DNA of 64,000 nt, from contig OZ316899.1 of the NCBI GenBank assembly GCA_973895155.1, forward strand, positions 457,573 to 521,572, given 5' to 3'. The DNA comes from Marsupella aquatica (taxonomy: Eukaryota; Plantae; Marchantiophyta). Under the pieces are notes generated by a model, which saw only the letters and a list, made by a program, of their open reading frames with translations, ran no database searches and was not told the DNA's origin. The position numbers and the translations under genes are program-made. Below, piece by piece: positions 6,849 to 32,733 of this stretch (its first letter is position 1; every line of letters begins with the position of its first letter).

Positions 6849-6885
6849 TAGCCCCCGTCTCAATTGTGAAGCGTCCTTGCAAACA

Positions 6886-8106
6886 CTAAACTCCCATGTG
6901 ATACTTCTTGAGCCGATCAAAGTGTACCCTGACTGGATAAACTTCACCCTCCAACGTTGCCAGTTGGACTGAGCCATTCTGAAAAACAGTATGCACAATG
7001 TATGGCCCCAACCAGCGAGTATGAAGCTTACCCGGGAAATGGACATAGCGAGAATCATATAGCAAGACCAAGTCACCAGTATGTAGTGCGGTGGGCTTGA
7101 TCTTCTTGTCATGATATTTCTTTGCAAGCTGCCGGTGATGCTCCAAGCGCTCGTTGGCATGCTCCCTAGTCTCCTCCAATCTCTCCAGTTGGCATGTTCT
7201 CTCCCTTAGACTTGAACCCGCCGGCATTCTATCTTCCAAAGTGACTCTCAAGGAAGGCACTTCAAATTCAACCGGTACAATTAGAGCGTGTTGTCCAAAA
7301 ATCAGGAAGTATGGCGTCTGACCTGTTGTGATCTTGTAGGCCAGGTTGTAAGCATATACCGCCGAATAGAGCTTGACGTCCCAATCAGTCTTGTGAGATG
7401 CCACTGTCTTGTTGAGAATTTTGCCAATGATTCCATTAGCTCTTTCTGTCAGACCACTAGCCTTCGAATGATAAGGAGTGGTCTTCCGGTGCTTCACCCA
7501 GTACTGGTTGGTAAGCTCCTCGATAGTTGTATTCAAGAAATGGGTCCCCCGATCACTCACTAGTTCTAAGGGTGGTCCAAATCTACATAAAATCTGCTCA
7601 TATAGAAATCTGGCCATTGTTTTGGCATCGTCCCTTGCTGTTGGTCTAGCTTCTACCCACTTGGTAGCATAATCAGTAGCTAGCAAGATGTATCTATTCT
7701 TGCGACTCTGAGTGACTGGGGTGATTGGACCAATGAAGTCAATACCCCACTTCTCAAAAGGAGCTAGAGGCAAAATTGGAGTAAGAGGATGATGTTGCGA
7801 GAAAGCTGGTTTACCTGTCTGTTGGCAGGGGTCGCAAGCCCTGATAAACAATTGAACATCCTTGTGCAAAGTAGGCCACCAATAACCAGCATCCATGACC
7901 TTCCTTGATGTGGTTGCTGCTGCAAAATGTCCTCCGGCCTCTTCTTCATGTAAAGCTCTTATCACTACCTCTACTTCGTTCTTCTCCAAGCATCTCCTGA
8001 TCGTTCCATCAACTCCTTCCTTGTGTAGCACTCCCTTGATCAGCATGTAGGGTCTGGTCTTTCTCAAAAAGACAGCAGCAACCTCTTGGTTCATCTCCCT
8101 TGGCAT
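6886..8106 (-). CDS. pol: Integrase region of element C pol (open fragment)
   Basis: HHCC zinc finger (H..GGH...WWPTLHKD...CDPC), core WGIDFIGP...LVSDRGTHF...GLTERAN, C-terminal RWLGPY. Confidence 0.92.
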   Translation of the reverse strand: MPREMNQEVAAVFLRKTRPYMLIKGVLHKEGVDGTIRRCLEKNEVEVVIRALHEEEAGGHFAAATTSRKVMDAGYWWPTLHKDVQLFIRACDPCQQTGKPAFSQHHPLTPILPLAPFEKWGIDFIGPITPVTQSRKNRYILLATDYATKWVEARPTARDDAKTMARFLYEQILCRFGPPLELVSDRGTHFLNTTIEELTNQYWVKHRKTTPYHSKASGLTERANGIIGKILNKTVASHKTDWDVKLYSAVYAYNLAYKITTGQTPYFLIFGQHALIVPVEFEVPSLRVTLEDRMPAGSSLRERTCQLERLEETREHANERLEHHRQLAKKYHDKKIKPTALHTGDLVLLYDSRYVHFPGKLHTRWLGPYIVHTVFQNGSVQLATLEGEVYPVRVHFDRLKKYHMGV

Positions 8107-8177
8107 CCTTGCCGAGGATAGAAACTCGATGATATCCTTAATACCAGGTTGGCGGGTTGAGATTGACTTGGAACAAG

Positions 8178-11100
8178 TGTGGTAGAGTGGTCAGACCGTT
8201 AAAGAACACTTTAACCTCTAAAGACCTGAATTCGTTCCCTGTAAGAGTGAATGAAAAGCAAATTGGTACTAAAAAGATCAAATAAGATGTTGATTTGGCA
8301 TAACCTCACCAAGGAGTTCTCTCTCCTGAGGATTGATAGTAATCAATGCACAAAAACTAATAATAAAAGAAAGGCATGGAAAAGGACTAGTAAGAATGTC
8401 TTATCAATTGACTCATGAGAAGAGATGATGGAAAATGACGATCCCCAGCAAATCAATAGGATTCTGGATTTTTAAGATTCAGAACGCAACAGAGCTCATA
8501 ACATGGTCGAATTAGAATAGACATCAAACATTAACTAGAAATTGACATGGAGATCTAGCTATCAAACCAAGAATTCTTTCTGGTCAACAAATGTGACGGT
8601 ACTAGAATGCTTGAATTGGTATCTTCTCACACAAAGATTTCTAGATTGTCAAATTGATATCTTCTCAATCAAATTTAGATAATTACTCATGGGAAAGGAA
8701 ACATTCCATTTCGACTACTGGAACAGCAAGAGTTCAATGCTACCTAGAATCCATATGAGTAATTCAAATCAAAATCCAACTTCAAAGTATGATGGTAAAA
8801 TTTCTAAGTATTAACTTCTCAGAAGAAGGAGTCTGCAGTTCTGCTCACAACAGGTCAAGGCTCAATAGGAGCACCTGAGGAGGAGCTTCTATGCTTCCAA
8901 CAGAAACTGAGAACTAAAGAAAAATGAATCTGTGTTCCTCCAAAGATACACAAAGGAAGGATCCCAAAAGTCACAAAGTGTCATTTCCGGTTTTCGTGGA
9001 AGAAAAATTAACTATCAATAAAAATCCGGAAATGAGAACAAAGGAAAATCCAAAAATGGATGTAAGGCAAAATCAGGATTTTGATTTCCGGTTCTACTAC
9101 TAAATCCGGATTTAGATCCTAGTCGGATCCGGAAATGCTAACTAACTAACTAAAACAACTAATCTACTGAGCATCATCAACTACATCTACTCTAACTGAC
9201 TCATGTGTAAGATCAACTGGACTAGCAAGTTTCAGAGGAGTAGATGTAACTAAACTCGCAGTAGCCTCCAAGTCCTTCAAATCAAAAGGTGTTCCCCGTG
9301 TTGGACTGATAGTCGGAGGTGACACTGACGGAAAACGGAACTCAACCTTCTCAAATCCGGGTGGAGTGCCTCCTGCTTCATTTTCCTCTTGCAACACCGG
9401 AGATGTTCTGGATTCCGGAATCCGGATTCTGGGAGGAGTCAACATGGACTTTGCATCCAAAATCACTTTCTCCATTTGCTCAAACGTTTCGGAAATCTTC
9501 TTGGCAAAGCGGTTATTGCACTCAATAACCTTAACAAGGGTGCCTGGGTTGGCTGTCGCTAAATATTTATCTATCAGGTTAGCTTCCAACAAGCTCAGGA
9601 CTGGTACAAGAAGTGCTTCCTGAATACTGGTAACTGCAGCATTCAGTAGTTTTCGGATCTTCAGGTGTTCCTCCAACTTCTTCTGTGCAACATCCAACTG
9701 GTCCACCAAAGAGTCAATCTTCTGTCTGTCCTTGAAGGCCTGATCCTCCAAGTCCCAGATCCGCTTCTTAGCTTGACTCTTGATTACCATGTCCAGAGTG
9801 GAAACGATGACAACCGGGCTGCAGTTGAGCATCTCAGCAACCGTCCCAACAAGGTCCTCAAGTTGTTTTGTCTTTCCGGCCGCACTCTCCAAGAAAATCC
9901 GGACATGCTCCAACTCTGCTGATGCCATCCACTTTGAACTGGGGGTCACACCCGGAAGACTTTCTCTACTTTTTGGTCCCCGGACAGGTTCCGGAACTTC
10001 AACAGGATCCGGTTCCGGACTCTGCACAAATTTCTTCTGTGTCCTGGGAGGTCGCACTTCCACAACCGGTTCTTCTTCCGACTCAGTCCCTTCAGATGGT
10101 TGTCGATCCGGATCTTTGAGTTGGGCTAACATGGCTTGATTCTCATACTCCTCCGCTTCTTCATCTGTAAGAATCTGGTCCATCGCGTAAATATTGGCTA
10201 GATAGCAAGAAAGGGATGTGGGAGTCTTCAAATGAAGATTCCGGACCTGGTTGGCTATAACTTCCTCCAAAACTTTGGCCCAGGAAATCTTCTTCTCCCC
10301 TATGTAAGAAGCAGCAATAGTATTTCCAATCCGGATTGTAACTTGTCGAGGCTTGGCAGGGGAAAGAAGTGGAAGCAAAAAGGACAGAACGTCGTAAAAC
10401 TCCTTATTACAGCACTGGGACACCTTCCAACCGTCTTTCGGATCCACTTCACCATCAAAATAGTTATCTGCAAAGGAATTCTTGGAGGTCAGGAAGCCTT
10501 CTCCTTTCAAAGGCACATCCAAGAGTGAAGAGATTACTGCCGCAGTCCACTTTTCCGGTTTGGCTCGAATAGAATCCGGAAATTCCGAAGCAAGGGTCGT
10601 ACAATTCCGGACCTCCTTCACAAATACTGCACTCTGGTAGCCCCATGGCAACTCCATCAACTTTGCACAACCCATGGTCTCAAGGTTCTTTTGCAAGCGG
10701 TCCTTCCTCGCCAAATCCGTGGGAATCTCCGGTCGGAGTGGCTTTTCATTCACAATCACTGTCCACTCCTTGGTCGTTCGCTTTGGTAGCGTCTGGATTC
10801 CGGATTTGTCCGGGGAAAAATCCGGATCCTTTCTCTTCACCATAATGAGAAGATGGAGAGAAAGAACCAAATTAAAATCCTTCCAAAAACCGGAATTCCC
10901 AAATCCGGAAATCTCAATCAAGTCGCAAACTTCCCCTCTCAATCGAACGATCACCCACTTCCCCTGTAACCAACTTCCTTTCAACTATTGCCTCAAAACG
11001 GCAGCCTTGTCCGACTCTAAGCTCTCCTATGATTCCTCGCAAAAGATTTATGCAGCAGTTTGGTGGTGTGAGGAATGCTCGGTCTGGCGCGGTCTTAAGA

Positions 11101-11366
11101 ACTCGGTTGCCAATTTCCGGTCTCCGGTCGGACGTCAGACTTATGGTTTTAATATTCATTCTCCCACGCCTACTCGCATGGCTCAACGGTGTCGTTACTT
11201 AAGAGTTCCACAAAAAAGGTGCTATCCGGATATTTCCGGATTCGATATTGCAAAGTAGTTTGTTATGGTCTTTTCCGGTCAAAGTATACGCCGTTAACCA
11301 CTAAAAGTTAAATTTTTTTAAATTTTTGTACTTTTTAATTTCCTTATTTATAACCATGGTATCACA
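8178..11366 (-). mobile_element. Family J solo-LTR-like element (3,189 bp) carrying an intact ORF
   Basis: TG...CA termini (TGTGATACC / CTCTACCACA on minus) and perfect 5-bp TSD ACAAG (8173-8177, 11367-11371). Removing it rejoins C pol (..DEDL|FQV..W). Confidence 0.9.
9164..10843 (-). CDS. LTR-encoded protein, 559 aa from ATG: PMD/Transposase_32-like domain, acidic/Pro linker, coiled coil
   Basis: Uninterrupted frame (ORF track 606 aa from an upstream alternative start). Motifs LMELPW, W...VISSLLDVP, YFDGEVDPKDGW...C...LSFLLPLLSP, SW..VL, LSCYLANIY align with the A and F proteins. Confidence 0.85.
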   Translation of the reverse strand: MVKRKDPDFSPDKSGIQTLPKRTTKEWTVIVNEKPLRPEIPTDLARKDRLQKNLETMGCAKLMELPWGYQSAVFVKEVRNCTTLASEFPDSIRAKPEKWTAAVISSLLDVPLKGEGFLTSKNSFADNYFDGEVDPKDGWKVSQCCNKEFYDVLSFLLPLLSPAKPRQVTIRIGNTIAASYIGEKKISWAKVLEEVIANQVRNLHLKTPTSLSCYLANIYAMDQILTDEEAEEYENQAMLAQLKDPDRQPSEGTESEEEPVVEVRPPRTQKKFVQSPEPDPVEVPEPVRGPKSRESLPGVTPSSKWMASAELEHVRIFLESAAGKTKQLEDLVGTVAEMLNCSPVVIVSTLDMVIKSQAKKRIWDLEDQAFKDRQKIDSLVDQLDVAQKKLEEHLKIRKLLNAAVTSIQEALLVPVLSLLEANLIDKYLATANPGTLVKVIECNNRFAKKISETFEQMEKVILDAKSMLTPPRIRIPESRTSPVLQEENEAGGTPPGFEKVEFRFPSVSPPTISPTRGTPFDLKDLEATASLVTSTPLKLASPVDLTHESVRVDVVDDAQ

Positions 11367-11371
11367 ACAAG

Positions 11372-12795
11372 TCCTCGTCAGGGAATTTTGATCATCAATC
11401 ACCTTCTCATCTACTGGTCCTTCAATCCTGGAGAAAAAATCAGCATTTGTGTGTTGCTTACCTGGCCGCACCCGGATCTCATAGTCAAATTCTTGGAGTA
11501 GTAGCATCCACCTTGCCACTCTCCCAGTCAAATCAGGTTTGTTGACCATATATTTCAGAGCATTATGGTTAGTGTGAAATACTACCTTGTAGCCCAGCAA
11601 GTAGTGTCAAAACTTCTTACACGAGTAGACTATCCCTATAGCTTCTCGATCGGTAGCAGAATAGTTCTTTTCAGCAGCAGCTAGGAGTCTACTTGCAAAA
11701 TAGATGGGATGATCTCTGCCATTGTTATCTAGTTGACTGGGAACTACTCCAATACAAAAGCTAGAGACATCAACAAAGACATGGAATGCCTTGTTCCAAT
11801 CAGGTACCATCAGAATGGGAGCTTCTACGAGCTTTTGCTTCAGTTGGTTGAAACTTGCTATCCTCTCAAGTGTAGGCTCAAAATCAGAGTCTAATTTCAA
11901 CATGGAAGTCATTGGGAAAGCTATCTTTGCAAACTCTTGAATCAACCGTCGATAGTAGCCAACGCAGCCTAGAAACCCCTTGACCTCGGTAATAGTAGTT
12001 GGAAAAAGAATGGCTAACCAAACAGCCACTTTATCCAGGTCTACTTCAATTCCACGCTTGGAAACCTTGTGCCCCAACAAGATACCCTCACTTACTCCAA
12101 AGAAGCACTTGCCTGGATGTAATTTGAGACCGGTTTCTCTGCAACGCTGGAAGGTTTGTCTCAAGTAGTTGACATGGTCCACAGCCTTCCTGTAAACAGC
12201 AAAGTCGTCAATGAAAACCTCTAGAAATATCCGCAAAAAGTCATGGAAAATGTTCATCATCAATCGCTGGAACATTCCTGGCGCATTACAAAGACCAAAC
12301 GGCATTCTACGAAAGGCAAAGACTCCCCACTCAGTTGTAAAGGCAGTCTTGAGTTGATCCTCTAGTTGGATCCAAATCTGATTATAGCCTGATTAACCAT
12401 CCATGAAGCTATAGACCTCTTGCCCAGCAACAATGTCTAGTATCATTTCCGTGAACGGAATGGGATAACGATCTTTCATGGTGGCCTCATTCAACTTTCT
12501 ATAATCTTGACATATTCTGATTTTTGGTTTTCCATTAGGTCCCGGTTTCTTTGGTACAATCACTAGTGGAGACACCCACTCACTAGTCATAACTGGATAG
12601 ATGAAACCAGCATCAAGAAGCCTATCAATCTCTTCCTTCACCATTAGTGAGTATCTAGGGTTCATCCTATATTGCCTTTGCCTGATTGCCTTAGCTCCGA
12701 GCATCAAATCAATCTTCAGTTCACCAAGTTCAGGGTTGACTCCTGTGATATCTCGATGACTCCAAGCAAAGACATCCATGTACTGATTTTGTAAG
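11372..12795 (-). pseudogene. pol: RT and RNase H of element C (frameshifts and stops)
   Basis: VFAWS, YRKLNEAT, MPFGLCNAP, FIDDF, VDVS.FCIG, YSATDREA, RWMLLLQEFDY. Confidence 0.92.
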
Positions 12796-15370: not shown

Positions 15371-15509
15371 GCTGCATTGGATCTAATCTGGATCGGGCGG
15401 ACCTCAGGGAGTGCATTTTTGATGGTTGCGCTTCCCTTTGGAAATTTTTGCACTAGAAATAGGAAGCCTTAATCTTTTTCCTCATTTTGCGGCACAAGGA
15501 TTCAGGAAC

Positions 15510-16421: not shown

Positions 16422-18757
16422 TGTCACGTCGTCGGCTTCGGCCTTAACTCAGACTTAAGCTTAGACGGGCACATCCCTCGTAAATCTGAGGGTTCGGGCA
16501 GGGAGGGAAGCGTGTAATGCACCTAATTCACGTAAACTAGCGCTAAGTGCGCCTACTGTTAGATACGGACATCTCCTAGGTATGGTTTGTGTTCCGCCGC
16601 CGAAAGGTACCTTAGTCGATAACAGGATCGACCCCGGCTTAAGGACTTCTAAGCCTTCGTGTTGTCCGCCTTCGATCCGGATTCCATGATATAGGTCCTC
16701 AACCCGTGCTCGCAACCACATCCCCGCAAGCTGCACCTCGTGCACGATTCGGGTAGTGTGTTTGGCCTGGCGTTGTCACCTATACACGAGATTCACACAC
16801 ACATACACGCGCACAAGCATACAATCTTGATTTACACGAAGGAAATAATGGGAAAGGATTTTACTACATAGGGGACATGTGCGTACACTTGGTTGACCCG
16901 ATAGCTCCGGAATGAACAGGTTCAAGGCTGAGAGAGTATACTACAATGGAGCCCGGCTCCGCACTCGCCTGACGAGCTTAGTCCTACCCCCTCCCCTTGG
17001 TACTCTTTCACTCCCAGAGGCCGGGACTCCCCGCACATACCACGGATGTCCAACTCTGAGACTAAAACCCCCCCTGCCTCTACCGAGGGGTGCACTAAAT
17101 ACTAAGGGCCGAGGGATGGGGTGTTCTCTCGCCGAAGATTCGCTGACTAAGGTCCTAACTAAGCTGACAGTCAGGCCGGAAAACGGCTGTGTCTTATTAG
17201 AAGATCCTAATCTACGCAGGCTGGACAGCATGACAGCGCTGCTGTACCTAAGGCAGGTGCCTGTCCCAAGAGCCTGACTAAGCTAGTCCTAATCCTAATC
17301 TATTCCTGCTCTGCTGCTAATGCCTGGCACGCTTGCCAGAGCCGCCCGAATGGGAGCGGCCATCCCGCTGCCTTTGAAGCCTGTCATTGTCCGCCTTGAG
17401 GAGCTGGACCTGGTCCAGCAGAGATTCGTTCTCTCGCCTTGCCGCGTCCGTCTCCTCTGCTGCCTCCTGACATGCCTCCTCCAGCTGCTGGGCGTCGCTC
17501 GTCAGTTTACCCGCCAGCTGGTTCTGCTTCTCGGCCTCGGTTTGGAGTCACGCCACCTTGGCCTGCAGCGTGGCTATCTCCGTAGTGTCCCGCTGGGCCC
17601 GTTCTTCGGCCTCCTCCAGGTCCTTCTGCCAGATGACAGTTTGATTCTTCAAACTGTCAATCTGGTTCCGGAGTCGTGCAATCTCGGCCTCGTTCCCAGC
17701 TTTGGCCTGCTCGGCTAGGGCGGTAAGGGCGTGCGCCTTTGCTAACAAATCATCGGCGGCTGCAACCTTGGGTCGTAGTTGCAGAAGCTCAGCCTCTTGA
17801 GCCGCAACTTCGTTCTTTAAGTAGACGGACTCCACCCGGTACCGCTCTATCCTCTAAAGGGCCTCTGACTGGGCCCGACCTGCCTTTACTGCGGCAACTA
17901 ACTCCTGATTGAAGAAACAGGCTACCTTCCAGGCCATGAACTCCCCGGTATCCCGGGCAATTTGATGAGAGAAATCTCCCAGAAGCCCGTTCAGAAATGT
18001 ACCCGGTACGAAGAGTTCCGAGTGGTCCAGGTTGTGCCTGTCCGGAGTTGGGCATGGGCAGACGTCAACACGCGCGGGGGCCGGGGCAGTGACGTCCAGC
18101 CCTAGGGATGTAATGTTGGAAGGGGCTGGAGTGTCCTCCTGCAGCAATGTCCGGTTCTCCGGAATAGCCACCGGTGGGTCTTTGGGAGACCCGGGCTCGG
18201 GTAAGACCTCCGCCGTACCGACTTCTGTACTTAGCCCGGCCTGTTGGATCGCATCAACGGTTGCGACAACCGACCCATCCGGTACCTCCTCGGTTACGAC
18301 TACAGCTACTTGTGGAGGTGGGGTGGGTGAAGCTGGCGTGTCCGCTGGACTTTGGGCCTCGGGTTGGGGCCGTCTCTCCAAGGCCGGAAAAACCCACCTA
18401 GCTGGGACCAACTTTGTAACGTTGACACGGGGAAGGGTTTGTCGATCAAACCGAGCGTACCACTCAAGAATGATCTCGATGTGGCTAGCGAAATATGCCT
18501 TCCCGCCAATGTACAGCATCTTCCTTTGCCGCTCCATCTCTTCATGGAATTTCTTAGCGAAGTACGACGCCCATTTCCTAGGTCGATAGTTCTCGACCTG
18601 GATAACCTGGGCGGTGGAGATCTCCCCCCGGGGTTCCATCATGTGGAGGGCGTACCTCTAGAACTCCAGTCGCTAGGCTATCTCGGGGATGAGGCAGGTC
18701 CTCATCACAAACCCGTTGTCCACTGCTCCTTCCGAGGGAAAACTTGAGGATTGGTAC
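16422..18757 (-). mobile_element. Family F LTR, 3' portion, carrying a PMD-like/coiled-coil ORF remnant
   Basis: Terminus ...GACGACGTGACA on the minus strand interrupts the L1 frame. The other end is lost behind A2, so no second TSD is visible. Confidence 0.7.
17290..18757 (-). pseudogene. F LTR-encoded protein remnant: PMD-like C-terminal half, Pro-rich linker, coiled coil
   Basis: FPSEGAVDNGFVMRTC..PEI..RLEF.RYALH..PR...KWASYF...FASHIEIILEWY, followed by EVAAQEAELLQLRPKV...LEEACQEA; a few stops. Confidence 0.75.
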
Positions 18758-20583
18758 TGTGATGCCTAGCCAGGAATCACTCGGCCAGTTAAGTGGGTAA
18801 AGCAGGAATGCACCCTAGAAACACCTTAGTATAGGGACAAAACAAGGAAAATATAAACAATTAGGGGCGACCATGGAACCCGGGCCGAGGCCGGAGGTAA
18901 GGACGCTGGGGGTGAAAACTCGATTAGGGTTAGGGCGCGTTAAGCGTCGGTGGCTAGGAAGGATCAACGGGAGGAAGGACCGGAAGAGGAGAGGGGTAAG
19001 GAGCACTTGCAGGAGATGGTGGCTCATTTGCGAGCACGAACTAGGCGGACGACTACGGGAGGCCAACTACTGTCAGCTGCTTAGGCAAGCACTCGGGGAG
19101 AGAGTAGATACCGACGATCGACCTAAGGAGGGTATGAGCAACGTCAATCAAGCGGCACATTTCTGGGGATGCCTGTTCGAACGGGCAACTGAGTACATCA
19201 AGACTTACGAGGACAAGGAATCAGAAAGGGCAGCTCGAGAACGGCAGGAGCTCGCTCGATTGTGGGAGCTGTAGAAGACGGTTTTCTTAGGAGGCAAACT
19301 CATCAACGCCGAGTTCTTGTGGACTCCTACTTCCAATCAGCTCGACGATCTTCTGTTTTGTGAAGACAGAATCATCGGCATTCGAGAGGCCATCAAGAAC
19401 TGCAACGGCATACACTAGGAATTGAAGGGTAGCACGGAAGGGTGGACCCCGGCAACGGTGCTAGGAGAAACCTCCACGGCAGCAGAGATGAAGAGGAAGG
19501 GAGCCGTCAACGATGAAGCCACCCCGGCAAAAAGAACGAGGTCGGCGGCACCAAGGAAGCCAGCCGAGCAGCAGAGCAGGAGGCAGGGAGAAGCCGAAGA
19601 GGAGGAGGTTGATCCCATCAATGCCATTCCAACCAGGGATGACACCTGGAAAGGCTAGGCGGCAACCCTACCGGTGGAGGTGCAACTACATTTTGCACGG
19701 GAGGAGGATGCATGCTTTACGGCCATGCAGACCAAGAAGTACCAAGGCTTCATGGCCGGATCCGGCTTAGAGGCCTTTGTAAGATTACCATGGCTGAAGC
19801 CGGAGGTGCCGGATTCAGACCTATTAGAATTTGTGGGGTCATGGGAACCCGAGACCAATTGCACGAGGATATATGGGAAGGATTTCTATCTTACTCCCAA
19901 GGTGATTGCCGAAGTGTTTGGCTTGCCGATAGGCAATAAGACCAAAGTTGATACCAGGAAGACCTTGCCTGACAAGGAGTTCCGGTCGTTCCCCGGGCCA
20001 TCAACGAAGAATGGCTTCTTCCGGAACACCTGCACCAACCCACACATAGGAGAGATGATCGACTTCTTGCGGGTGACCATGCACTGTAACTTGCCGAGGG
20101 TAGAGGTCGGCAAGGCATAGGTCTATCTGGCAGAGAGGCCAGACCCAAGCCGGGACTACAACGGGTACCTCCTCAACCAATTGAAGAAGATCTTAAAGGA
20201 GGAGCAGCAGGTAATTGGCATGGGGAGCGTGTCGCGGCTTGGCTATCACATGCCGCTGTTGTGCCGGTATGCCAGAGGTCAGACCTTTGCCCCAGTACTT
20301 CCCCTGCAGGTAAGGGCACCCGAGGAAGCTCCAGCACCGAGGCCGGTAGCAGAGAAGCCTCAACCACCTGTTAGCCCTACGATCGAGCAGGTGTTTAGGC
20401 CAAGGACGGAGGACTTGCCGATGCAGCAACCAGGCATGCAGAATCTGCTGAAACTACTGGAGAAAGAAAAGAGATCGACATCGGCAACGACAACGGCAAC
20501 GGCAACAATGCAGGACACTGCTCCAGAGGTAGGCCTACACCGGCTTACAAGGGAAAACCCCTTTACTGGAGACAAGGAGAGAA
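18758..20583 (+). mobile_element. Family A LTR, copy A2 (5' 1.8 kb) with N-terminal and PMD-like coding region
   Basis: Starts TGTGATGCCTAGCCAGG. Encodes MEPGPRPEV..., VGIREAIK..., GLEAFVRLPW...EFVGSWEPETNCTRIYGKDFYLTPKVIAEVFGLP, with TAG stops. Confidence 0.85.
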
Positions 20584-23088: not shown

Positions 23089-24179
23089 CAATGTCACCGT
23101 GTTATCCTCTCGGGCTTGCTGGAGTGGTGCCGGGTTGCTTGGCGCCTATTGAGTCGTACCCTGCGGCCATCAATTCAGAGGAGGGTGAGCTTCCTCGTCT
23201 TCGGAGCTAATATTCACCGCATTCACCCACAGATCATACTCGGAGAGGTGGTGCGACCGGTGGTGGGGATCGGCTTGGCTGAGGCCGAGGCGGTGTTGGT
23301 GCGGACACGGATTGGTGGGTGCCAGTTGCAGTTGGGGGAGGCGTCATTAGATTCAGGTAGTTCCTGGGGAAGTTGAGTGATGTGGGATGGCTCAGTGTCA
23401 GCTAGTGTAGAGAAACATGACATTCTTTCGTTTAGAAGAGGAAATAGTTAGGGAAAAAGTTTTAGTGCTATCAGAGTAGCTAGGTTTAGGGCACTTAAGT
23501 AAGAAGGGAAGCTTAGTAGAGGTAAGAGGGAATTTTAGTTATGCAAAGTTATCTAGGGGTAAGCAAGTTACTATAGGAGGGGCAGGAAACTAGTTCCGTC
23601 CTTAGTTATAATAGGCGACTAAGTCGGGACCGAAAAATGACCCGACACCGGACATCTTATTTTTGGCTGATATTTCTCCCATGGGTGCTGGGAGGTCCCT
23701 AGGGAACCCTGAAAAAGTATGAAGTCAAGTGGGGTCTTAACCTAGGAGTTATAAGTATTTTGGCAAAAATCAAAGTTACCAAATAGCGGGTCCCGGGAAA
23801 AATAGCTGATGGGTAAATGTAGGGGTTCCAAGTTTGGAAGTGGGTTAAGTATGGTCCCCTCTATCCCTAGAAACTTGTGGGACAACTTTGTCACACTTGG
23901 TTACTTTTTGGGAGCATCTCAAAGTTGAGAAGAATTTTGGAAGACATAAAGACTTGACCCTCTTTGCCTAATTTTAGAAAAGTTGTTATAGGGTTTTGTT
24001 TATATCTTAGTAAACCCGGACATAGTCCTATGTCCATAGAATCAGTGGAGCTACTCAGAAGTCCTTTTGGACTTATGTGTGAGTTTTGGAGGGGGGTCCA
24101 AAATCGCCCCAAAATGCTGTTTTTCCAAAAAAAAATGTATTTTTTTCTAAGTGTAAACCGCGTGGGCGACGATCACGCG

Positions 24180-24855
24180 GCGAGCACGAGGCAAGGAGGA
24201 GCGAGCACGAGGCAAGGAGGAGCAAGCACGAGGCTGGTGAGGACGTCAAGCACCGGGAGGCTGTCCAAAGGTGCTGCATGATTACTTGAGGAATCAATTG
24301 AGCACAAGGGCGGCTGAATTGAAGGAAGGGCGGCTGAATTGAAATGGCTGCTGCTGATTGAAGAAGCAAGGGCTGCTGCTGATTGAAGAAGCAAGGGCTG
24401 TTGCTGATTGAAGAAGCTATGGCTGCTGAGAAGGAAAAGAGCTATGGCTGCAAATTAGGATCGCTGCTGGCTTTGAATTGGGAAGGCTGCTTGCTGCTAT
24501 GACAGCTGCACACTAGATTAGAGGTGCTCCTACTAATCAGGCACGAGATGCTCATGAGAATTGGCTGGCTGCTGCCTTGATGCTGCTGAATTGAATGATG
24601 CTGCTGCTAGCTGCGAAATTGCAAAGGTGGGCAGCTACGAAATTGAGAAGAGAGACCTGCTTGACTGAGAAGGAATCAAGCTATGGTTGCTGCTGCTGTG
24701 CTTCAAATCTGCTGTTGTTGTGCTGTAAATGCGCTGATGTGACTGTGCTGCTAGCTGCGAAATTGACTGTGTTGCTAGCGGCAAAATTGAAGAGGTGAGC
24801 TAGCTGCGAAATTGACTAGGCTGGCTGTGAGCTATGGTGGCTGTGAAATTGAGGG
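24180..24855 (+). repeat. Short tandem and dispersed repeats in U3 of the H LTR (also at +9353)
   Basis: 21-bp unit x2.6 at 24180, 25-bp unit x3 at 24346, GCTAGCTGCGAAATTG-like motif about x6. Confidence 0.85.
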
Positions 24856-25725
24856 GCTGGCGGCTGATCAGCTGGACTGCTGCACAAGAAAGAATCCAAT
24901 AGAGAATGCTGTGGTTTTAGATTGAATTCACGAGAGAGAAATGGCTGCAAACATTGCTGTCCTTACAATTTCTTCATAAGAAACATGAGTATAATGAGAG
25001 TGCTCTCCCCTCATGACACGTGGAATCCCCATAAGGGGCATGTAAGGTAAGTGTAATCGGGCCGCCGCTTACACCCGCTTTACACCAAAAACAGGCCTTG
25101 GGAGAATGGGCATAACTTTGGCTAGAGGTATCCGTTGGGGCCCAAATTTTTTTGTGCTGAGTTAGGGGAAGATAAGGCACCCCCTGGTGAAGGTGGAACC
25201 CCAGAAAAGTAATCACTCAAATATATTTTTAACCGAGGCCACGAGGGAGTCCCGACAACTTGCAAACCAAAGTCGGCATAGGGGAATGAATACCAGATTT
25301 AGGGGCTGACCTTTCTTGCACCCATACCACTTGAGTTAGGCTCTAGAGAAGGGTACTTACCTTTGGCCAAAGGTGTAAGGCCATCAAGTTAAGAAAAGTA
25401 AATATAGGGGGTAGTTTACTTAGGGTAGTAAAGGGGTTACAAGTAAAATAAGGCCAACTTTGACTAGGCACAACTTGAGACTCACTCACTCTTTTTGCGA
25501 GCTTTCAAGTGGGTTGGTAAGCTGGTGAGGAGGACCATAAGTGGGAGTAGGTTTGGAAGTCAAAGCATACCACTCATGTGTGGCATATTCCAGGGCTTGG
25601 AAGGAGGCAAAATAGCAAGTAGTAGGGTGGGCTATGAACTATAGAGTTGGACTTTGTGTGTTAGGAGGACTTGGGGGAGGTATAGTTGGACCCCAGGTCA
25701 AGCTTGGTGTGATGTGGAAGGAGAT

Positions 25726-25735
25726 AGTATATAAG
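25726..25735 (+). promoter_or_regulatory. Putative TATA box of the H LTR, with AATAAA ~155 nt downstream
   Basis: GTATATAAGG followed by AATAAA near 25885; position fits a U3/R boundary. Confidence 0.55.
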
Positions 25736-26590
25736 GAGGAAGTTTTCATTTGTTAGGGACCGGGAGTCTCATCTCTTAAGTGAAATCTCTACCTTGCCAA
25801 GGTAGGGCTAAGCTTGAGAAAGGAGAGGTGGTCCATGCTTAGTGTGGAGAATGTGTAGTGAACTTTTGTTGTAAAGGTGATGCAATAAAAGGAGACTTAC
25901 CAATCTTCATTGTGACCATTAAGTGTGAGTGCATTTGAAGTATATGAGAGCAAGAGAAGAGTCCATGCTATGGTATAATCTTGGTCTAAGCTTGAAGGGG
26001 ATGTGCTAGTACAAAACCAAGGCCAAGGAGGCAAGGTTAAGGTATAGCATTACTTTGAGACTTAGAGAGGATTATAGCTTGAGGGTGGAAAGTACTTTGC
26101 TTGGTGTGTGGTGTTAACAAGAAGTAAGAACAAGAGGAAGAGTCCTTAGATAGAGGAGCCTTCTCTAGGGCTCAAAGGGGATGTGTGGACCCAAACCAAG
26201 GCCAGGGGGGCAAGGTTGAGGGGTAACACTACTTTGAGGGTCTTGAGGAGACTTAAGCTTGAAGAGGAAAGTACTTTGGGTTCTTGGGTGTTTGTGTGAG
26301 AATCTACTCTAAGGTGACAGCTTGGAGCGGAGATCCCCCTTGCTGATCCTTGGAGTAGAGGAGAGGGGAAGGGGTGAGTACAAAAGTAGTCAAGGGGACT
26401 ACCTCTCTAGAAGTGGAGAGTTGAAACTACTTATGTATGGAGTGATTGGACATTGTAAGCACACTTCAGAAGTTTTGTCAATCCTTTGTGACCCTGGTAT
26501 GACATGGAGCAGGTATTAGGTAGTCTTTTGGGGAGAAAAGCCGCTTAAGCTCCTTGACAAGTGTTTGACATAGAGTCCCACCCTTGTTTT

Positions 26591-26608
26591 TGGCGCCGCT
26601 GCCGGGGA
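26591..26608 (+). promoter_or_regulatory. Primer-binding site, tRNA-Asp type
   Basis: TGGCGCCGCTGCCGGGGA, one base from the Athila-type TGGCGCCGTTGCCGGGGA; 20 nt downstream of the LTR end. Confidence 0.8.
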
Positions 26609-26714
26609 CAACTCTTTACAGTTTTTGTTGGAGTGGAGCCACAAGACTTGGAGGTGTGTTTGCAGGTTTGCTGTTCAAGAGAAGAAGGGAGATAAGAAGG
26701 TGATTGTGAGTGGC

Positions 26715-29700
26715 ATGCCCACTACAAGGAGTCAAGCACTAAAAGAAGCCTCTCTTAGTTTCAACTTTGGTGACCAGTTGGAGCAACCAGATTGGGTGGA
26801 CATTCATTTGCAAGCTGAAGCGGAACCTGGTGTAGGGTGGAGTGATACATCTTCTTCCACTACCAACACAAGTGAAGATCAAGAAGCAGCCATGGTGGTG
26901 ACTCAAAGAGCAAGATTTCAGTACAAGACATTCCATGGCAAGCCCAAGGAGGATCCTGATGCTTGGTTGGAGGACTTCATTGGGACAGCCCAAGCCAATG
27001 GAGAGTTTGATATTAAGTTGACCACTTTGGCGGGGGTCTTGAGAGGAGAAGCAAGACCTTGGTTCAATAGCCTATCAAATGCCATCAAGAATGATTGGGA
27101 TGCCTTCAAGCTAGCATTCTTGCAGGAGTTTAGGAAGGTGGGAGAAGAATCGGAAGCTCTGATCAAGATGGGAGAGATCAGAATGGGATCCAAGGAGTCA
27201 GTAAGGAGGTTTCTGCAAAGGTTTCAAAGGTTAGCTACCAAGCTTGACCCCAGACCAGTAGACTCCATGTTGTTGGCTTGGTTTGTGGCAAGCCTACCCA
27301 AGAAGATGGGTGTCTCAGTAAGGCAATCTCACCCTAATACGTTGGATGAGGCCATTGAGGCGGCTCAGTCTTATAGGAGTGCTGAGATCTCTAGTTCCAA
27401 GAGTAGGAGAAAGAAGAAGCGATTTGCTTATAGTGATTCTTCTTCTAGCTCAAGTGAATCAAGTAGTTCAGTTGAGGATACTTCTGAGTCGGAATCTGAG
27501 GAGAGTAGTTCCAGTTCTGATTCAGAATCTGATTCTGAGGAGGACTCCGAGAAGAAGAAGAAGAAGAAGAAGAAGAAGGCAAAGAGAAAAAGCGACCAGA
27601 AGAGGAGAGCCAGCAAGAAGAAGCCAGGTGGTAAGCACCACAAATCTGCAACCTTCAACTTGGTGGAAGGTTCTACACCAGCAACCAAGGAGAAGAAGGT
27701 GATGGATAACAAGATGAGTGAGATCACCAACCAACTCAAGGCCCTATCAGTTCACTTTGCTGGTGTGCAACCTGATAGGAGAAAAGTGCCGGTGAATAGA
27801 GCCCATGTATGGTGTGTCAAGTGCAAGAGTTTTGGCCATACACCTCAAGAGTGTCAAGGTTGGAGGAATCAAGTTCAGTATGTCAATGAAGAGTCCAACG
27901 ATGTTTATCAAGCAAGTGAAGTGGTGGACTACTTCTATGAAGAAGCCCCGGAGATGGTGTACCAGATTTCAGGAGGCCCAAGAACTTTGCAAGGAAGACC
28001 AGCTCCACCCATGGCACCTCAACTGATGCCTGGTCTTCAACCAAGGATGGTGGATCAAATGGGACCTCAAGGACCTGGGGGAGTGGCAAGAACTACCGTG
28101 GTGATCTGCTGGAACTGTCAAAAACCAGGGCACTATTCCAACAGTTGCCCCGAACCAAGGAGGCAGGGACAAGGAGCTCCCTATCCTCTTTGTGCTGTGT
28201 GCAAAAGGGAGGGTCATACCACAGCCAACTGTCCTATTGGATCTGCTGCCAAGATGATGATAGGAAGGATAGAAGCACCACCACCAGCGGTTGCCAAGGC
28301 TCCCGGTGAAGCCACAGTGAACTTCTTGAGTATGGAGTGGCAAGAGGAGGCCAAAGATGGAGTGACACAAGTTGCTGGTGGGGAGAACCAGCCAGATCTA
28401 CCAGGAATGGAGACACCTGAGGAGGAAGCTGTGTGTTACAAGGTGTCTACCAGGTCCACAAGAAAGAAGGAAAGAGTGGAAGAGAGGAAGAAGAGGAAGG
28501 AGAGAAAGGAGCACTCAACGGAGTCACCAATCGAAGTTGAAGTTGGAGCAGAAGTTCAAGTCCCACCAGCTGAAGATAGTGACTACAAGAGAGACCATCC
28601 GAAGCTCTTCTATCCCAAGGTGAATGAGGAAGTCAAGAGGCAACTAGAGGAGATGGAGGCTAAGGAGCATCAAGAGGCCATCAACAAAGACCTGAAGGTT
28701 GCTAAAGCTTTGAAGGAAAAAGCTGAGGTGGAAGAGAAGAAAGAGACCAGCAAGGTACCCTCTTATGACATCAAGAAGGATGTGAAAGATTGTTTGGTTA
28801 CTGCTACAGTGGGGCAGCTGATCAAAGACAACCCTTTGTATAGGAGGCAACTGAAGGAGATGTTGGTAGGAAGGAGAAGAAGGAAGCTTCCAAAGGTTGG
28901 TACCCCAGCTGATGTGATGATGGTTTGTGAAGACCTTGGAGCACCTGAGATTGATGTTCAAGTAAATGGGTGTGTACTCTCGTATGTACCAGTTGATGGA
29001 GGCTCAGGTGTGAATATCATGATTGAGGCTACTGCCCAACAACTAGGTTTCAAGAAACTTCAGCCAACAGCAAGGACAATGAGGCTAGCAAATGGAGCAA
29101 GAGTGCTACCGGTGGGGACACTTACTCAAGTACCTACTCTCATTGGGGGGCAGGAGTTCTTGTTGAATTACTTGGTGATGAGACCAGCAAGGCCATCTAC
29201 TTACCCAATCTTGATTGGGAGGCCTTGGCTATATGGAGCCAAAGTAGTGTCTGATTGGGGCAAGAAGGAGTTTAGGTTTGGCAAACCAGCCACTTCAGTT
29301 TCATGGGGTCATGACAAGCATCAAGGAGAGACTACTGATGAGTTGGATGAATATGATTCTGAACTTTCCGATGAGTTGAGTACCAAATCTGAATCTGATG
29401 AGGATGAGGTATACATGTTGAACATGGTGAGCCAATGGACTGAAGAAGAAGTGTTTGGAGAGGAGCAAGAGCAGGAGGCTCTTACCAGCCATTCACCTCT
29501 GCCCAGTCTCAGTGAAGTGACCAGTCTCGAGGAGGTGAAGCAGGCTGAGACCTCAGCCAAGGAGAGCAACCAAGAAGACACTATCACAATGGCTCAGGAG
29601 GTTGATCAGACCAGCAAGGGTGCTGCCCAAGTTGAGATCAAGACAAGGAGTAATGACCAGAGTTTAAAGGCTAAGCACTTAGCCTTGTTAAAGCTCAAGA

Positions 29701-32693
29701 TAAAGGAGCTAGAGGACCAATTGAAGGCTGCAAACTCAGAGGAGGATGAGACTCAGGAAGACCAGCATTCAAGCAAGGAGAAGGAGGAGTTAAGTGCTGA
29801 AAATGCACCCGTCTATGGAGGCATGAGGTTGGCACAACTTGAGGGCACTTTTGACTCCACAATGAGGAACAAGATGGAGGTGATTCGAGCTGAGCAGTAC
29901 AGAACCATCTCTGTCCAGCAAGACAAGACCTTCAACTTGGGAAATGCCCTGGGATCAGGTGAAGAGAAAACTATCCAAGATTTGCTAGGTGAATATGTGG
30001 ATGTGTTTGCTTGGAGTCACTTGGATCTTACTGGTGTAAACCCTGAACTTGGTGAGCATAGAATCGACTTGATGCTAGGAGCTTCACCTGTGAGACAAAG
30101 GCAATATCGGATGAATCCCAAGTACTCCTTGATGGTGAAGGAAGAGATAGACAAATTGCTGGAAGCAGGTTTCATCTATCCTGTGTTGAATAGTGAGTGG
30201 GTTTCTCCAATTGTCATAGTACCAAAGAAACCAGGCTTGGATGGTAAGCCTAAGATCCGAGTTTGCCAAGACTTTAGGAAACTCAATGAGGCCACTAAGA
30301 AGGACCACTATCCCATTCCATTTACTGATATGGTACTTGATTTAGTAGCTGGTTGGGAAGTGTATAGCTTCCTAGATGGGTACTCAGGTTACAACCAGAT
30401 TTGGATAAGGAAGGAGGACCAGTTGAAGACAGCCTTTACTACTGAGTGGGGGATTTATGCCTTTCGGAGGATGCCTTTTGGTCTTTGTAATGCCCCTGGT
30501 ATGTTCCAAAGGTTGATGATGAATATCTTTCATGACTACTTGAGAAAGTTCTTGGAAGTATTCATAGATGACTTTGCTGTTTTTGGAAGGGGGAAGGACC
30601 ATGTTGAACATTTGAGGATGACCTTCCAAAGATGTAGGGAAGTTGGTTTGAAGCTTCACCCAGGGAAGTGCTTCTTTGGTGTGGAAGAAGGGATACTACT
30701 TGGCCACAAGGTATCCAAGAAGGGCATAGAAGTGGACCAAGAGAAGGTTGCTGTTTGGATGGCTGTCAAGTTTCCAACTTCAGTGACAGAGTTGAGGGGA
30801 TTCTTGGGATGTTTAAACTACTATAGAAGGTTCATTAAGGACTTTGCTAAAGTAGCTTTACCCCTAACCAGCATGCTTAAGAAGGGGGCTGAGGTTGAAC
30901 CCTCAGTTGAGAGGCTAGCAAGTTTTCAGGAGTTGAAGAACAGGTTGGTTGAAGCCCCTATCTTGATAGCACCAGATTGGAGTAGAGAATTTCATGTGTA
31001 TGTGGATGTGTCTGGCTTTTGTATTGGTGTGGTGCTTAGTCAACTTGATGACCAGAATAGGGATCACCCTATCTACTTTGCAAGTAGACTATTGGCACCA
31101 GCTGAAAAGAATTACTCACCAACCGATAGAGAAGCTCTAGGAATCATCTACTCTTGTAAGAAGTTTAGGCACTACTTGTTGGGCTATAAGGTGGTCTTTC
31201 ATACTGATCACAATGCTCTCAAGTATATGGTGAATAAACCTGATGTAACTGGTAGAGTGGCAAGGTGGATCTTGTTGCTCCAAGAGTTTGATTATGAGGT
31301 GAGGGTCAGGCCTGGTAAGAAGCATGGGAATGCAGACTTCTTCTCAAGGATTGAAGGAGAAGAGGACTTGAAGGAGGTGGATGATCAGTTTCCAGATGAA
31401 GACCTCTTTCATGTGGGAAGTGGAGGAGATACATGGTATTTGGATATCATCCAATTTCTTCTCACAACCCGGCTACCAAGAGATTTGAACCAAGAGGAGG
31501 CTGCTGTTTTCCTGAGAAAAATCAGACCTTACTTATTGGTGAAGGGTGTCCTTCACAAGGAAGGAGTTGATGGGAGACTAAGGAGGTGTTTGGAGAAGAA
31601 GGAAATCTCCATTGTGATGAGAGCTATGCATGAGGAGGAGGCTGGTGGCCATTATGCAAGTGCAACAACAGCAAGGAAAATTCTTGATGCAGGGTATTGG
31701 TGGCCAACACTTCATAAGGATGTAAGTCTTTTTGTGAGGGGATGTGACCCTTGCCAAAGGACAGGTAAGCCAGCTCACTCAAGGCATCACCCTCTTACCA
31801 CCATCTTACCTCTTGCACCTTTTGAGAAGTGGGGTATAGATTTCATAGGTCCCATCACTCCTGTGACCAGGTCTAGAAGGAATCGATACATCCTTCTTGC
31901 AACTGATTATGCTACTAAGTGGGTAGAGGCAAGACCAACCAGCAAGGATAATGCTCTCACAGTAGCAAGGTTCATGTATCAACAGATTTTTACCAGATTT
32001 GGGCCACCTCTAGAGCTGGTTAGTGATAGGGGGACTCACTTCTTGAATGAAGTTGTGGAGGAGCTCACTAACCATTACTTGATTAAGCATAGGAAGACCA
32101 CCCCCTATCACCCCAAGGCCAATGGATTAACGGAGAGAGCTAATGGCATCATTGGCAAGATCTTGAACAAAACCGTGGCGGCACACAAGACTGATTGGGA
32201 TGACAAATTATACTCAGCTGTGTACTCCTACAACCTTGCTTTCAAGACCACAACCGGCCATAGTCCTTTCTACCTAGTATTTGGACAACACTCCCTTGTA
32301 CCTGTTGAGTTTGAAGTGCCTACTTTGAGGGTAAGTGTGGAGGAGAGAATGGAGGCTGACCAGAGTTTAATGGAGAGAGCTTACCAGCTGGAGGAGTTGG
32401 AGGAAATCCGGGAAGAGGCAAGCAAGCAAGTGAAGAAGAAGCAAGCTCAAGTGAAGCAACATCATGACAAGAAGTTGAAGAAGCCAACTTCTTTACTTGC
32501 TGGACAACTGGTATTACTCTATGACAGTAGGTATGCTCATTTTCCAGGCAAGTTGCATACTCGGTGGTTGGGTCCTTATGTTGTTCACCAGGTTTATGCT
32601 AATGGGTCAATTCAGCTTGCTACTCTTGAAGGAGAGGTGTTCCCTACTAGAGTGCATCATGATAGGTTGAAAAGGTACTTTAATCAGGAATAA
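26715..32693 (+). CDS. gag-pol: Gag-Pol polyprotein, 1,992 aa from ATG (capsid, three CCHC knuckles, protease, RT, RNase H, integrase)
   Basis: EDPDAWL; three CX2CX4HX4C; VDGGSGVN; MPFGLCNAP/FIDDF; VDVSGFCIG; WGIDFIGP/SDRGTHF/ERAN. No stops. Confidence 0.97.
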   Translation: MPTTRSQALKEASLSFNFGDQLEQPDWVDIHLQAEAEPGVGWSDTSSSTTNTSEDQEAAMVVTQRARFQYKTFHGKPKEDPDAWLEDFIGTAQANGEFDIKLTTLAGVLRGEARPWFNSLSNAIKNDWDAFKLAFLQEFRKVGEESEALIKMGEIRMGSKESVRRFLQRFQRLATKLDPRPVDSMLLAWFVASLPKKMGVSVRQSHPNTLDEAIEAAQSYRSAEISSSKSRRKKKRFAYSDSSSSSSESSSSVEDTSESESEESSSSSDSESDSEEDSEKKKKKKKKKAKRKSDQKRRASKKKPGGKHHKSATFNLVEGSTPATKEKKVMDNKMSEITNQLKALSVHFAGVQPDRRKVPVNRAHVWCVKCKSFGHTPQECQGWRNQVQYVNEESNDVYQASEVVDYFYEEAPEMVYQISGGPRTLQGRPAPPMAPQLMPGLQPRMVDQMGPQGPGGVARTTVVICWNCQKPGHYSNSCPEPRRQGQGAPYPLCAVCKREGHTTANCPIGSAAKMMIGRIEAPPPAVAKAPGEATVNFLSMEWQEEAKDGVTQVAGGENQPDLPGMETPEEEAVCYKVSTRSTRKKERVEERKKRKERKEHSTESPIEVEVGAEVQVPPAEDSDYKRDHPKLFYPKVNEEVKRQLEEMEAKEHQEAINKDLKVAKALKEKAEVEEKKETSKVPSYDIKKDVKDCLVTATVGQLIKDNPLYRRQLKEMLVGRRRRKLPKVGTPADVMMVCEDLGAPEIDVQVNGCVLSYVPVDGGSGVNIMIEATAQQLGFKKLQPTARTMRLANGARVLPVGTLTQVPTLIGGQEFLLNYLVMRPARPSTYPILIGRPWLYGAKVVSDWGKKEFRFGKPATSVSWGHDKHQGETTDELDEYDSELSDELSTKSESDEDEVYMLNMVSQWTEEEVFGEEQEQEALTSHSPLPSLSEVTSLEEVKQAETSAKESNQEDTITMAQEVDQTSKGAAQVEIKTRSNDQSLKAKHLALLKLKIKELEDQLKAANSEEDETQEDQHSSKEKEELSAENAPVYGGMRLAQLEGTFDSTMRNKMEVIRAEQYRTISVQQDKTFNLGNALGSGEEKTIQDLLGEYVDVFAWSHLDLTGVNPELGEHRIDLMLGASPVRQRQYRMNPKYSLMVKEEIDKLLEAGFIYPVLNSEWVSPIVIVPKKPGLDGKPKIRVCQDFRKLNEATKKDHYPIPFTDMVLDLVAGWEVYSFLDGYSGYNQIWIRKEDQLKTAFTTEWGIYAFRRMPFGLCNAPGMFQRLMMNIFHDYLRKFLEVFIDDFAVFGRGKDHVEHLRMTFQRCREVGLKLHPGKCFFGVEEGILLGHKVSKKGIEVDQEKVAVWMAVKFPTSVTELRGFLGCLNYYRRFIKDFAKVALPLTSMLKKGAEVEPSVERLASFQELKNRLVEAPILIAPDWSREFHVYVDVSGFCIGVVLSQLDDQNRDHPIYFASRLLAPAEKNYSPTDREALGIIYSCKKFRHYLLGYKVVFHTDHNALKYMVNKPDVTGRVARWILLLQEFDYEVRVRPGKKHGNADFFSRIEGEEDLKEVDDQFPDEDLFHVGSGGDTWYLDIIQFLLTTRLPRDLNQEEAAVFLRKIRPYLLVKGVLHKEGVDGRLRRCLEKKEISIVMRAMHEEEAGGHYASATTARKILDAGYWWPTLHKDVSLFVRGCDPCQRTGKPAHSRHHPLTTILPLAPFEKWGIDFIGPITPVTRSRRNRYILLATDYATKWVEARPTSKDNALTVARFMYQQIFTRFGPPLELVSDRGTHFLNEVVEELTNHYLIKHRKTTPYHPKANGLTERANGIIGKILNKTVAAHKTDWDDKLYSAVYSYNLAFKTTTGHSPFYLVFGQHSLVPVEFEVPTLRVSVEERMEADQSLMERAYQLEELEEIREEASKQVKKKQAQVKQHHDKKLKKPTSLLAGQLVLLYDSRYAHFPGKLHTRWLGPYVVHQVYANGSIQLATLEGEVFPTRVHHDRLKRYFNQE

Positions 32694-32720
32694 GTGTGTT
32701 TGCGGGGACGCTGCACACTT

Positions 32721-32730
32721 AAGTAGGGGG
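32721..32730 (+). promoter_or_regulatory. Polypurine tract of H
   Basis: AAGTAGGGGG, 3 nt before the 3' LTR. Confidence 0.8.
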
Positions 32731-32733
32731 CTA

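Follow-up and report, generated by a model that had tools for sequence, protein, structure and literature searches.

The window analyzed here, 64,000 nucleotides of the liverwort Marsupella aquatica (assembly GCA_973895155.1, contig OZ316899.1, positions 457,573 to 521,572 of the forward strand), contains an insertion, named J, that is a solo long terminal repeat (LTR) of a liverwort Ty3/gypsy family with an Athila-type primer-binding site (PBS). More than half of J is one intact gene for a protein of 559 amino acids (aa). In the group of families to which J belongs, LTRs of 3–5 kb carry a complete gene on their sense strand, and the J protein is modeled in four parts: a domain of ~210 residues, folded like the DNA-binding domain (DUF1985) of the transposon anti-silencing factor VANC21, is followed by a disordered acidic and Pro-rich linker, a stretch of long helices and a tail that is again disordered. 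Two further repeat families of the window, A and F, hold diverged homologues of this gene. We regard the anatomy and fold of J as very probably right. The explanation that we favor overall, with a probability of roughly 0.6, is that J is a solo LTR with a VANC-fold gene whose product would bind motifs packed in its own element.

Results

J is a solo LTR

The features that define J and its insertion site are as follows (positions are those of the window).

8178..11366, minus strand is sense: J, a solo LTR, from its TG..CA ends, its target site duplication (TSD) and junctions in public contigs
8173..8177, no strand: TSD ACAAG, left copy, read from the sequence, the same as 11367-11371
11367..11371, no strand: TSD ACAAG, right copy, read from the sequence, a perfect match to the left copy
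9164..10843, minus strand: intact 559-aa open reading frame (ORF) in the LTR, stop codon included, from the ORF list and with 394 homologue clusters
6901..8136, minus strand: integrase part of the host gypsy pol, found by tblastn with the polyprotein of element G of the window (aa 1607-2018, 75% identity)
11388..12794, minus strand: reverse transcriptase (RT)/RNase H part of the host gypsy pol, found with the same polyprotein (aa 1120-1588, 78% identity)

J is 3189 bp long. On the plus strand it starts with TGTGG and ends with ...ATCACA; in its sense orientation it starts with TGTGATACC and ends with CTACCACA. It splits a minus-strand Ty3/gypsy pol between the RT/RNase H and integrase parts, and neither gag nor pol lies inside it (8178-11366). 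The ORF, counted from its ATG to 559 aa, occupies 52.7% of J. A preliminary description of this DNA had given J as a TG...CA unit with a perfect 5-bp TSD, no gag or pol and a 559-aa ORF covering over half of its length, and the sequence confirms this anatomy. J contains neither internal direct or inverted repeats above 13 bp nor long terminal inverted repeats (TIRs), and we therefore dismissed the views that it is a small element bounded by short LTRs of its own or a TIR transposon.

To place J within a retrotransposon, contigs of four public runs, drawn from two studies and under two organism labels, were mapped onto positions 8000-11600 of the window. Each run yielded 700-900 contig pieces that match J, between a quarter and a seventh of them at least 99% alike, and J therefore belongs to a recently active multi-copy family. 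A joint from 8178 to 11388, present in contigs of two runs, represents the empty site, that is the host pol without J. Contigs leaving J at 8177 read, in sense, from the LTR end ...ACCACA through GCTTTT into TGGCGCCGTTG, a PBS, and those leaving it at 11366 read ...GGGGGTGG (also given as ...TTGGGGGTGG) followed by the LTR start TGTGAT, which gives a polypurine tract (PPT); these junction reads are consensus sequences from few contigs, with an agreement of 0.53-0.88. The gene lies between PPT and PBS and hence inside the LTR.

The same layout was found at several of the loci in other assemblies that carry homologues of the J protein (L001-L009). The most complete, L009, is an entire element with LTRs that are 99.3% identical, a 492-aa homologue in each of them, and PBS, gag, pol and PPT in between. 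In L004 the order is the end of pol, AAAAAGGGG, an LTR of ~3.5 kb with a 640-aa homologue in sense, CTTT plus PBS, and gag, while L003 has a PBS after the homologue ORF. Two loci come from Calypogeia fissa: L001, with an LTR pair that is 97.4% identical and whose first copy ends in CTACCACA followed by TTTT and the PBS, and L007, in which gag-pol, the PPT, the LTR start and the ORF follow each other. That the unit is an LTR with a gene of its own, as had been proposed, is borne out by the PBS and PPT junctions in reads, by the homologues that follow pol and precede the PBS, and by the L009 pair. The search for paired copies around gag-pol succeeded for homologues (the pairs of L009 and L001 and the order of parts in L004); for J, of which the 64-kb window contains a single copy, the contigs directly showed no such pair.

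The PBS pattern TGGCGCCG(T/C)TGCC after a short AT-rich spacer matched the J-type junctions. The spacer between LTR end and PBS measures 4-8 nt in J, L001, L003, L004 and L009, against 20 nt in G. The PBS of ATHILA has been published as TGGCGCCGTTGCC, of the tRNA-Asp/Asn type and preceded by a short AT-rich spacer (bioRxiv 10.64898/2026.03.20.713144), and Calypso and Diaspora have a PBS of this kind too (PMC1142308). A search for tRNA genes in the window and three loci, as a direct check of the PBS, found none, and the PBS type is taken from this literature. From the PBS type, tRNA-Asp/Asn, the lineage of the J family is provisionally classed as Athila-like.

The LTR-borne gene belongs to a large family under purifying selection

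An exhaustive phmmer search with the J protein returned 394 cluster representatives at E ≤ 1e-3, 179 of which had E ≤ 1e-10. The conserved part in these alignments is aa 20-300 of J, and some alignments extend to aa 460-520. All named homologues are entries termed "unnamed protein product" from C. fissa, and the others come from ENA, JGI and Logan assemblies. A word-index protein search and an exact look-up with the J protein gave no match, nor did a word-index search with the protein of family A. When the LTR-borne gene of L004 is compared with that of L006, the ratio of non-synonymous to synonymous substitution rates (dN/dS) is 0.117 (52 differences, 34 of them at third codon positions), and for two C. 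fissa copies (L002 and L005) it is 0.28. The family of the J protein is large and under purifying selection, so that the supposition of a real gene family under selection withstood both the homologue search and the dN/dS comparison.

The two C. fissa copies form a case apart. L002:10001-11200 and L005:10001-11209 hold J-family genes of 399 and 402 aa at the identical position of collinear duplicated segments, with a Pro_isomerase gene upstream in both and neither pol, an LTR terminus nor a motif array nearby. Their ORFs are 97.2% identical and their flanks 92-94%. We considered both as solo LTRs and rejected this for want of termini and motif arrays. The pair is a candidate for a host-domesticated copy, judging from synteny and sequence, and hosts may have domesticated copies of the gene in this manner.

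Upstream of the J gene, one possible promoter element stands out.

11046..11052, minus strand: candidate TATA-like box CATAAAT, ~200 bp upstream of the ATG, from the sequence

No ATG lies between this motif and the start codon of the ORF, and its reading as the TATA-like box of the LTR gene is suggestive only.

The N-terminal domain of the J protein has a VANC21-like fold

AlphaFold models divide the J protein as follows (pLDDT is the predicted local distance difference test score).

10118..10756, minus strand: N-terminal globular domain, aa 30-242, AlphaFold (pLDDT >90); VANC21/DUF1985-like, PMD-like fold predicted
9932..10111, minus strand: predicted acidic, Pro-rich disordered linker, aa 245-304 (pLDDT <50)
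9440..9928, minus strand: predicted long helical, coiled-coil-like region, aa 306-468 (AlphaFold helices)
9167..9409, minus strand: predicted disordered Pro/Ser/Thr-rich C-terminal tail, aa 479-559 (pLDDT <50)

With an alignment of 92 sequences, residues 30-240 are modeled at pLDDT >95, and in the full-length model the helices of the third part span residues 306-339, 343-355, 357-411, 415-430 and 433-468. With Foldseek against the PDB, the VANC21-DNA complex was the sole notable match, at an E value of 0.31 that is not significant alone. VIA-align gave Z 7.3 for the J N-domain on that VANC21 chain. In an exhaustive VIA-align comparison with 48,161 PDB chains, VANC21 reached Z 7.8 with a root mean square deviation of 3.9 over 194 of ~210 residues, that is over the whole domain, a value that is moderate, being below 8, and that goes with a sequence identity of 8-12%. 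It was the only match with Z ≥ 5 among these chains, the runner-up scoring Z 4.0 over 59 residues.

The best matches bearing a Pfam family in the Atlas of predicted structures, in which both sides of each comparison are predicted models, were the ATHILA ORF-1 cluster (template modeling score, TM, 0.52 by query and 0.64 by target), Transposase_32 (0.55 and 0.46) and PMD (0.55 and 0.34). Sequence profiles told a different story. A PDB sequence-profile search with J returned only noise; PMD, Transposase_32, ATHILA and DUF1985 were all absent from 50 J homologues and, at E ≤ 1, from A and F; and none of J, the 50 homologues, A and F reached the Pfam gathering score of PF10536, PF20167, PF03078 or PF09331. 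The suggested likeness to PMD and Transposase_32 therefore splits in two: it stands for the fold (VANC21, PMD, Transposase_32 and ATHILA ORF-1) and falls for Pfam membership, and likewise the comparison with PF10536, PF20167 and PF03078 produced no profile match and predicted-structure matches at TM 0.52-0.55 by query. "PMD-like" is true at the fold level only. From the VANC21 and Atlas matches, the modeled N-domain of J can be placed, over its whole length, in the PMD/DUF1985 fold superfamily. PMD-C has been structurally tied to the DUF1985 of VANC (bioRxiv 10.1101/2024.09.27.615353).

Motif arrays differ between families and follow the protein clade

The J LTR is rich in sites built on CCGG.

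8986..11278, no strand: ~35 NCCGGN sites, counted in J

We counted 18 TCCGGA in J against 0.8 expected, expectations here and below being those of a first-order Markov model. The NCCGG sites span positions 89-2377 of the LTR in sense, upstream of the ORF, inside it (in all three frames) and downstream of it, and leave the last 800 bp free. L007, the closest homologue, encodes a protein 51% identical to that of J and its DNA is unalignable with J; its 3' LTR region has 19 TCCGGA against 0.9 expected. Other families have other motifs. L001 carries ACCCGGAC and its reverse complement GTCCGGGT in about 25 copies of CCCGGAC type, clustered just upstream and downstream of the ORF; L004 and L009 carry ACCGGAT-type motifs in 23-33 copies, at 5-11 times the expectation; and L003 carries TCCGTAT 25 times, about 80 times the expectation, 18 of the 25 forming an array immediately upstream of the ORF. 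No comparable array was found in the ORF-less LTR of G or in the non-LTR copies L002 and L008.

Because the motif is kept where the DNA has diverged, and varies with the protein clade, we propose that the protein binds its own element. Each LTR would act as a unit of promoter, gene and terminator, a full element then having two gene copies and a solo LTR one. The protein would recognize a short family-specific motif packed in its own element, TCCGGA in the case of J and of L007, its closest relative, and CCCGGAC, ACCGGAT or TCCGTAT for the other families. Binding might keep the element transcribed, by anti-silencing or by transactivation, as VANC21 does for VANDAL21. This mechanism of DNA binding and anti-silencing, drawn by analogy, is a tentative proposal that we would not yet bet on.

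Families A and F are diverged relatives of J

The relevant copies, and the intact sister element G, are located as follows.

47505..58277, minus strand: family-A unit of ~4.7 kb plus two insertions, with termini TGTGATGCG ... GCACCACA, checked in part
19659..20117, plus strand: family-A copy of the J-type domain, hidden Markov model (HMM) E 1.3e-4, hhalign 93.6%
62912..63658, plus strand: family-A copy of the J-type domain, HMM E 2.9e-4, ORF 62918-63661
17000..18757, minus strand: family-F relic that keeps the domain's C-terminal half (with two stops), a Pro-rich linker and a coiled coil, cut by an A insertion at 18758
23381..35923, plus strand: intact sister element G, with LTRs of 3190 bp that are 99.97% identical and TSD AGTGA

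The preliminary description had presented J, A and F as three unrelated LTR families that encode alignable peptides followed by a Pro-rich linker and a coiled coil. A tblastn search of the window with J left A and F unmatched. An HMM of the J family, run over 1237 six-frame pieces, found the two A copies at E values of about 1e-4, and hhalign, comparing the J family with a small alignment of A and F, gave a probability of 93.6% (E 2.2e-7, 111 columns), with A positions 24-140 corresponding to J aa 53-166 and covering the stretch aligned earlier. The J-A similarity is thus weak but real at the profile level and invisible to tblastn. F clearly matches A, with a Smith-Waterman score of 106 against 26 ± 4 for shuffles; directly against J it was undetectable, also when the J-family HMM was run on F read through with X at stops. 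The linker and long helices, modeled by AlphaFold in J, were recognized by eye in the translations of A and F, and with the F-A score and the A-J profile match this upholds the described order of domain and coiled coil in both. For the A ORF at 62918-63661, the nearest language-model neighbors are Transposase_32 (0.85), ATHILA (0.84) and DUF1985 (0.75), which serve as leads only.

As for kinship, J and A have the termini TGTGAT.CC ... ACCACA in common, and the elements of the J family belong to the same Athila-type PBS lineage as G, whose PBS TGGCGCCGCTGCCGGG lies at 26591-26606, 20 nt after the LTR end, and which also has a PPT plus TGTGG junction. With termini and PBS lineage in common, J, A and F point to divergence from one LTR-borne gene, and they are best read as related by descent, with fast divergence of their DNA; the description as unrelated families has to be given up.

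The A units show some further peculiarities. The flanks of the unit at 47505-58277 are near-identical (ACCTT and ACCCT), and the A start TGTGATGCC occurs at four places with differing left flanks. Two A copies begin right after purine-rich, PPT-like stretches, at 20570-20600 (GACAAGGAGAGAA) and 59540-59575 (AATGGGGGAG). At 18758-21497, a second A start follows the first by 1826 bp, an arrangement suggestive of A units in tandem or of recombination. A repeat family of ~2.4 kb has three copies (48885-51380, 60553-62913 and 36800-38098), one of which sits in an A copy and has the look of a solo LTR; near this repeat, at 51748-51951 on the minus strand, the J HMM gave a faint, non-significant match (E 0.9).

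Separately, the degenerate gypsy element that hosts J also contains a plus-strand long interspersed nuclear element at 13109-16458, in which an endonuclease ORF (Exo_endo_phos) comes after an ORF1 of 753 aa containing DUF4283 and a CCHC knuckle.

Discussion

Weighing the explanations

A number of observations weigh against a VANC-fold gene that acts on its own LTR. No Pfam family matched J at E ≤ 10, and a common fold at Z 7.8 with 8-12% identity is no proof of a common function. The LTRs of G are as long as J and have no ORF above 105 aa; G does without the gene, which is not obligatory. The LTRs of family A have the gene and no obvious motif array; conversely, the motifs are also enriched in gag-pol, in L007 at 2737-2780 and 4024-4168 and in L009 at 3460-9300, and the motif could be the site of a host transcription factor or a compositional quirk. 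None of the public RNA runs searched contains J. Lastly, at 23 positions nearly all contigs of the family differ from the J copy at 8178-11366, and the 14 of these private changes that fall in the ORF comprise 10 non-synonymous and 4 synonymous ones, a count of low statistical power whose polarity derives from contigs of mixed subfamilies. A ratio of 10:4 is what neutrality predicts, and the J copy seems to be drifting neutrally. Fifteen of the 23 changes are C-to-T or G-to-A, as would be expected if a methylated and silenced copy had undergone deamination. Several of these changes stand in CpG or CHG context. The J copy is young and intact, with no sign of selection of its own.

These data raise the question of whether the gene at the J locus is a dead passenger, its ORF intact only through youth, silent and drifting, solo LTRs in general keeping no working gene. 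We give this close to an even chance: the mostly C-to-T type changes in the ORF, the absence of J from the RNA runs and the stops that fill the A and F copies of the window all agree with it. The claim that the gene survives in every solo LTR is doubtful in view of the 10:4 count. On the other hand, the ORF has remained whole, the TSD is perfect, the 14 sites with polarity from mixed subfamilies have little power, and isolated copies can be maintained, as the non-LTR genes of L002 and L005 illustrate with ORFs more alike than their flanks (97.2% against 92-94%) and dN/dS 0.28. A further explanation is that the LTR gene serves replication or the particle, as a Gag partner, nucleic-acid chaperone or targeting factor similar to the ORF1-associated domain of Athila, the CCGGA arrays being promoter or enhancer sites for host factors. 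The ATHILA ORF-1 cluster is indeed among the best fold matches (TM 0.52 by query, 0.64 by target), the motif is frequent in gag-pol of L007 and L009 too, and family A has the gene without the array. We nevertheless think such an accessory role unlikely, since the sole solved structure with this fold is VANC21 on its target DNA, TCCGGA is kept between J and L007 in spite of unalignable DNA and the motif changes with the protein clade, and a place in the LTR, apart from gag, suits a trans-acting regulator better than a stoichiometric part of the particle. That J is no LTR, and that its TG..CA ends are a coincidence in some independent non-autonomous mobile element or captured host gene, is highly improbable. 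It would account for the one J copy in the window and for the lack of a directly seen J pair around gag-pol, and it conflicts with the PBS and PPT junctions that reads show for J copies, with termini that match true LTRs of the same lineage, with homologues inside paired LTRs and with the lack of internal repeats and long TIRs.

Relation to known systems

Like the J protein, VANC21 is encoded by a transposon, the Mutator-like DNA transposon VANDAL21/Hiun of Arabidopsis (DUF1985; PDB 9lnj, 9lnk). It binds short motifs arrayed in its own element and strips DNA methylation there, and the targets of VANC proteins arose as tandem arrays of short motifs (PMC8756742). The elements of the J family resemble that of VANC21 in holding dense, family-specific arrays of short motifs within the encoding element itself. 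They differ in that VANC21 comes from a DNA transposon and is not encoded in a terminal repeat; moreover, the two proteins are 8-12% identical, J has no DUF1985 HMM match, and the long helical region is an addition of J. The Arabidopsis proteins MAIN, MAIL1 and MAIL2, of PMD-C type, fall in the same fold superfamily as J; they counteract silencing and are associated with specific DNA motifs that are partly palindromic (bioRxiv 10.1101/2024.09.27.615353). Unlike J, they are host genes, without detectable sequence similarity to J and without its coiled-coil architecture.

In Ty3/gypsy elements of angiosperms (Ogre/Tat/Athila), PMD-A and further extra ORFs are accessory proteins with the same predicted fold as J, and an Athila-type PBS is common to these elements and the J family. 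PMD-A has been placed in gypsy elements of angiosperms (PMC5418596), and the extra ORFs of Ogre/Tat/Athila elements were reported by Steinbauerova et al. (2011), as cited there. These known ORFs are internal, upstream of gag or downstream of pol, whereas the J gene lies in the LTR and in liverwort hosts. Extra PMD-type ORFs of plant gypsy elements are thus already known, and the new part is the position in the LTR; our search of the open-access literature found no description of a protein gene inside a plant LTR.

In layout, the nearest analogue of the J gene is the LTR-encoded Sag of mouse mammary tumor virus (MMTV). The sag ORF lies complete in the U3 of the LTR and is present in both LTRs of the provirus, and its product is a superantigen with a role in immune modulation. 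Sag belongs to an animal retrovirus, the protein and its function are unrelated to J, and MMTV is not known to have self-targeting motif arrays.

Implications

Plant gypsy elements have long been known to encode accessory proteins of PMD type; placement in the LTR doubles the gene in each element and leaves it behind in each solo LTR. The fold ties the J protein to VANC21, an anti-silencing factor with a solved DNA complex, and motifs that track the protein clade provide a concrete, testable hypothesis of which protein binds which motif. The broader idea, that liverwort gypsy LTRs carry a self-targeting anti-silencing module made of a VANC-fold protein and co-evolving motif arrays (YCCGGA and variants), is one that we put forward as somewhat unlikely on present evidence. 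If it were true, counter-silencing of the VANC kind would occur in bryophyte LTR retrotransposons as well as in flowering-plant DNA transposons, with a bearing on how the host PMD genes MAIN and MAIL arose. Solo LTRs, commonly regarded as inert scars or promoters, could then be protein-coding loci, every LTR, solo ones included, would be both source and target of the factor, and a family could act in trans to hold its own copies, or the solo LTRs scattered from it, open to transcription.

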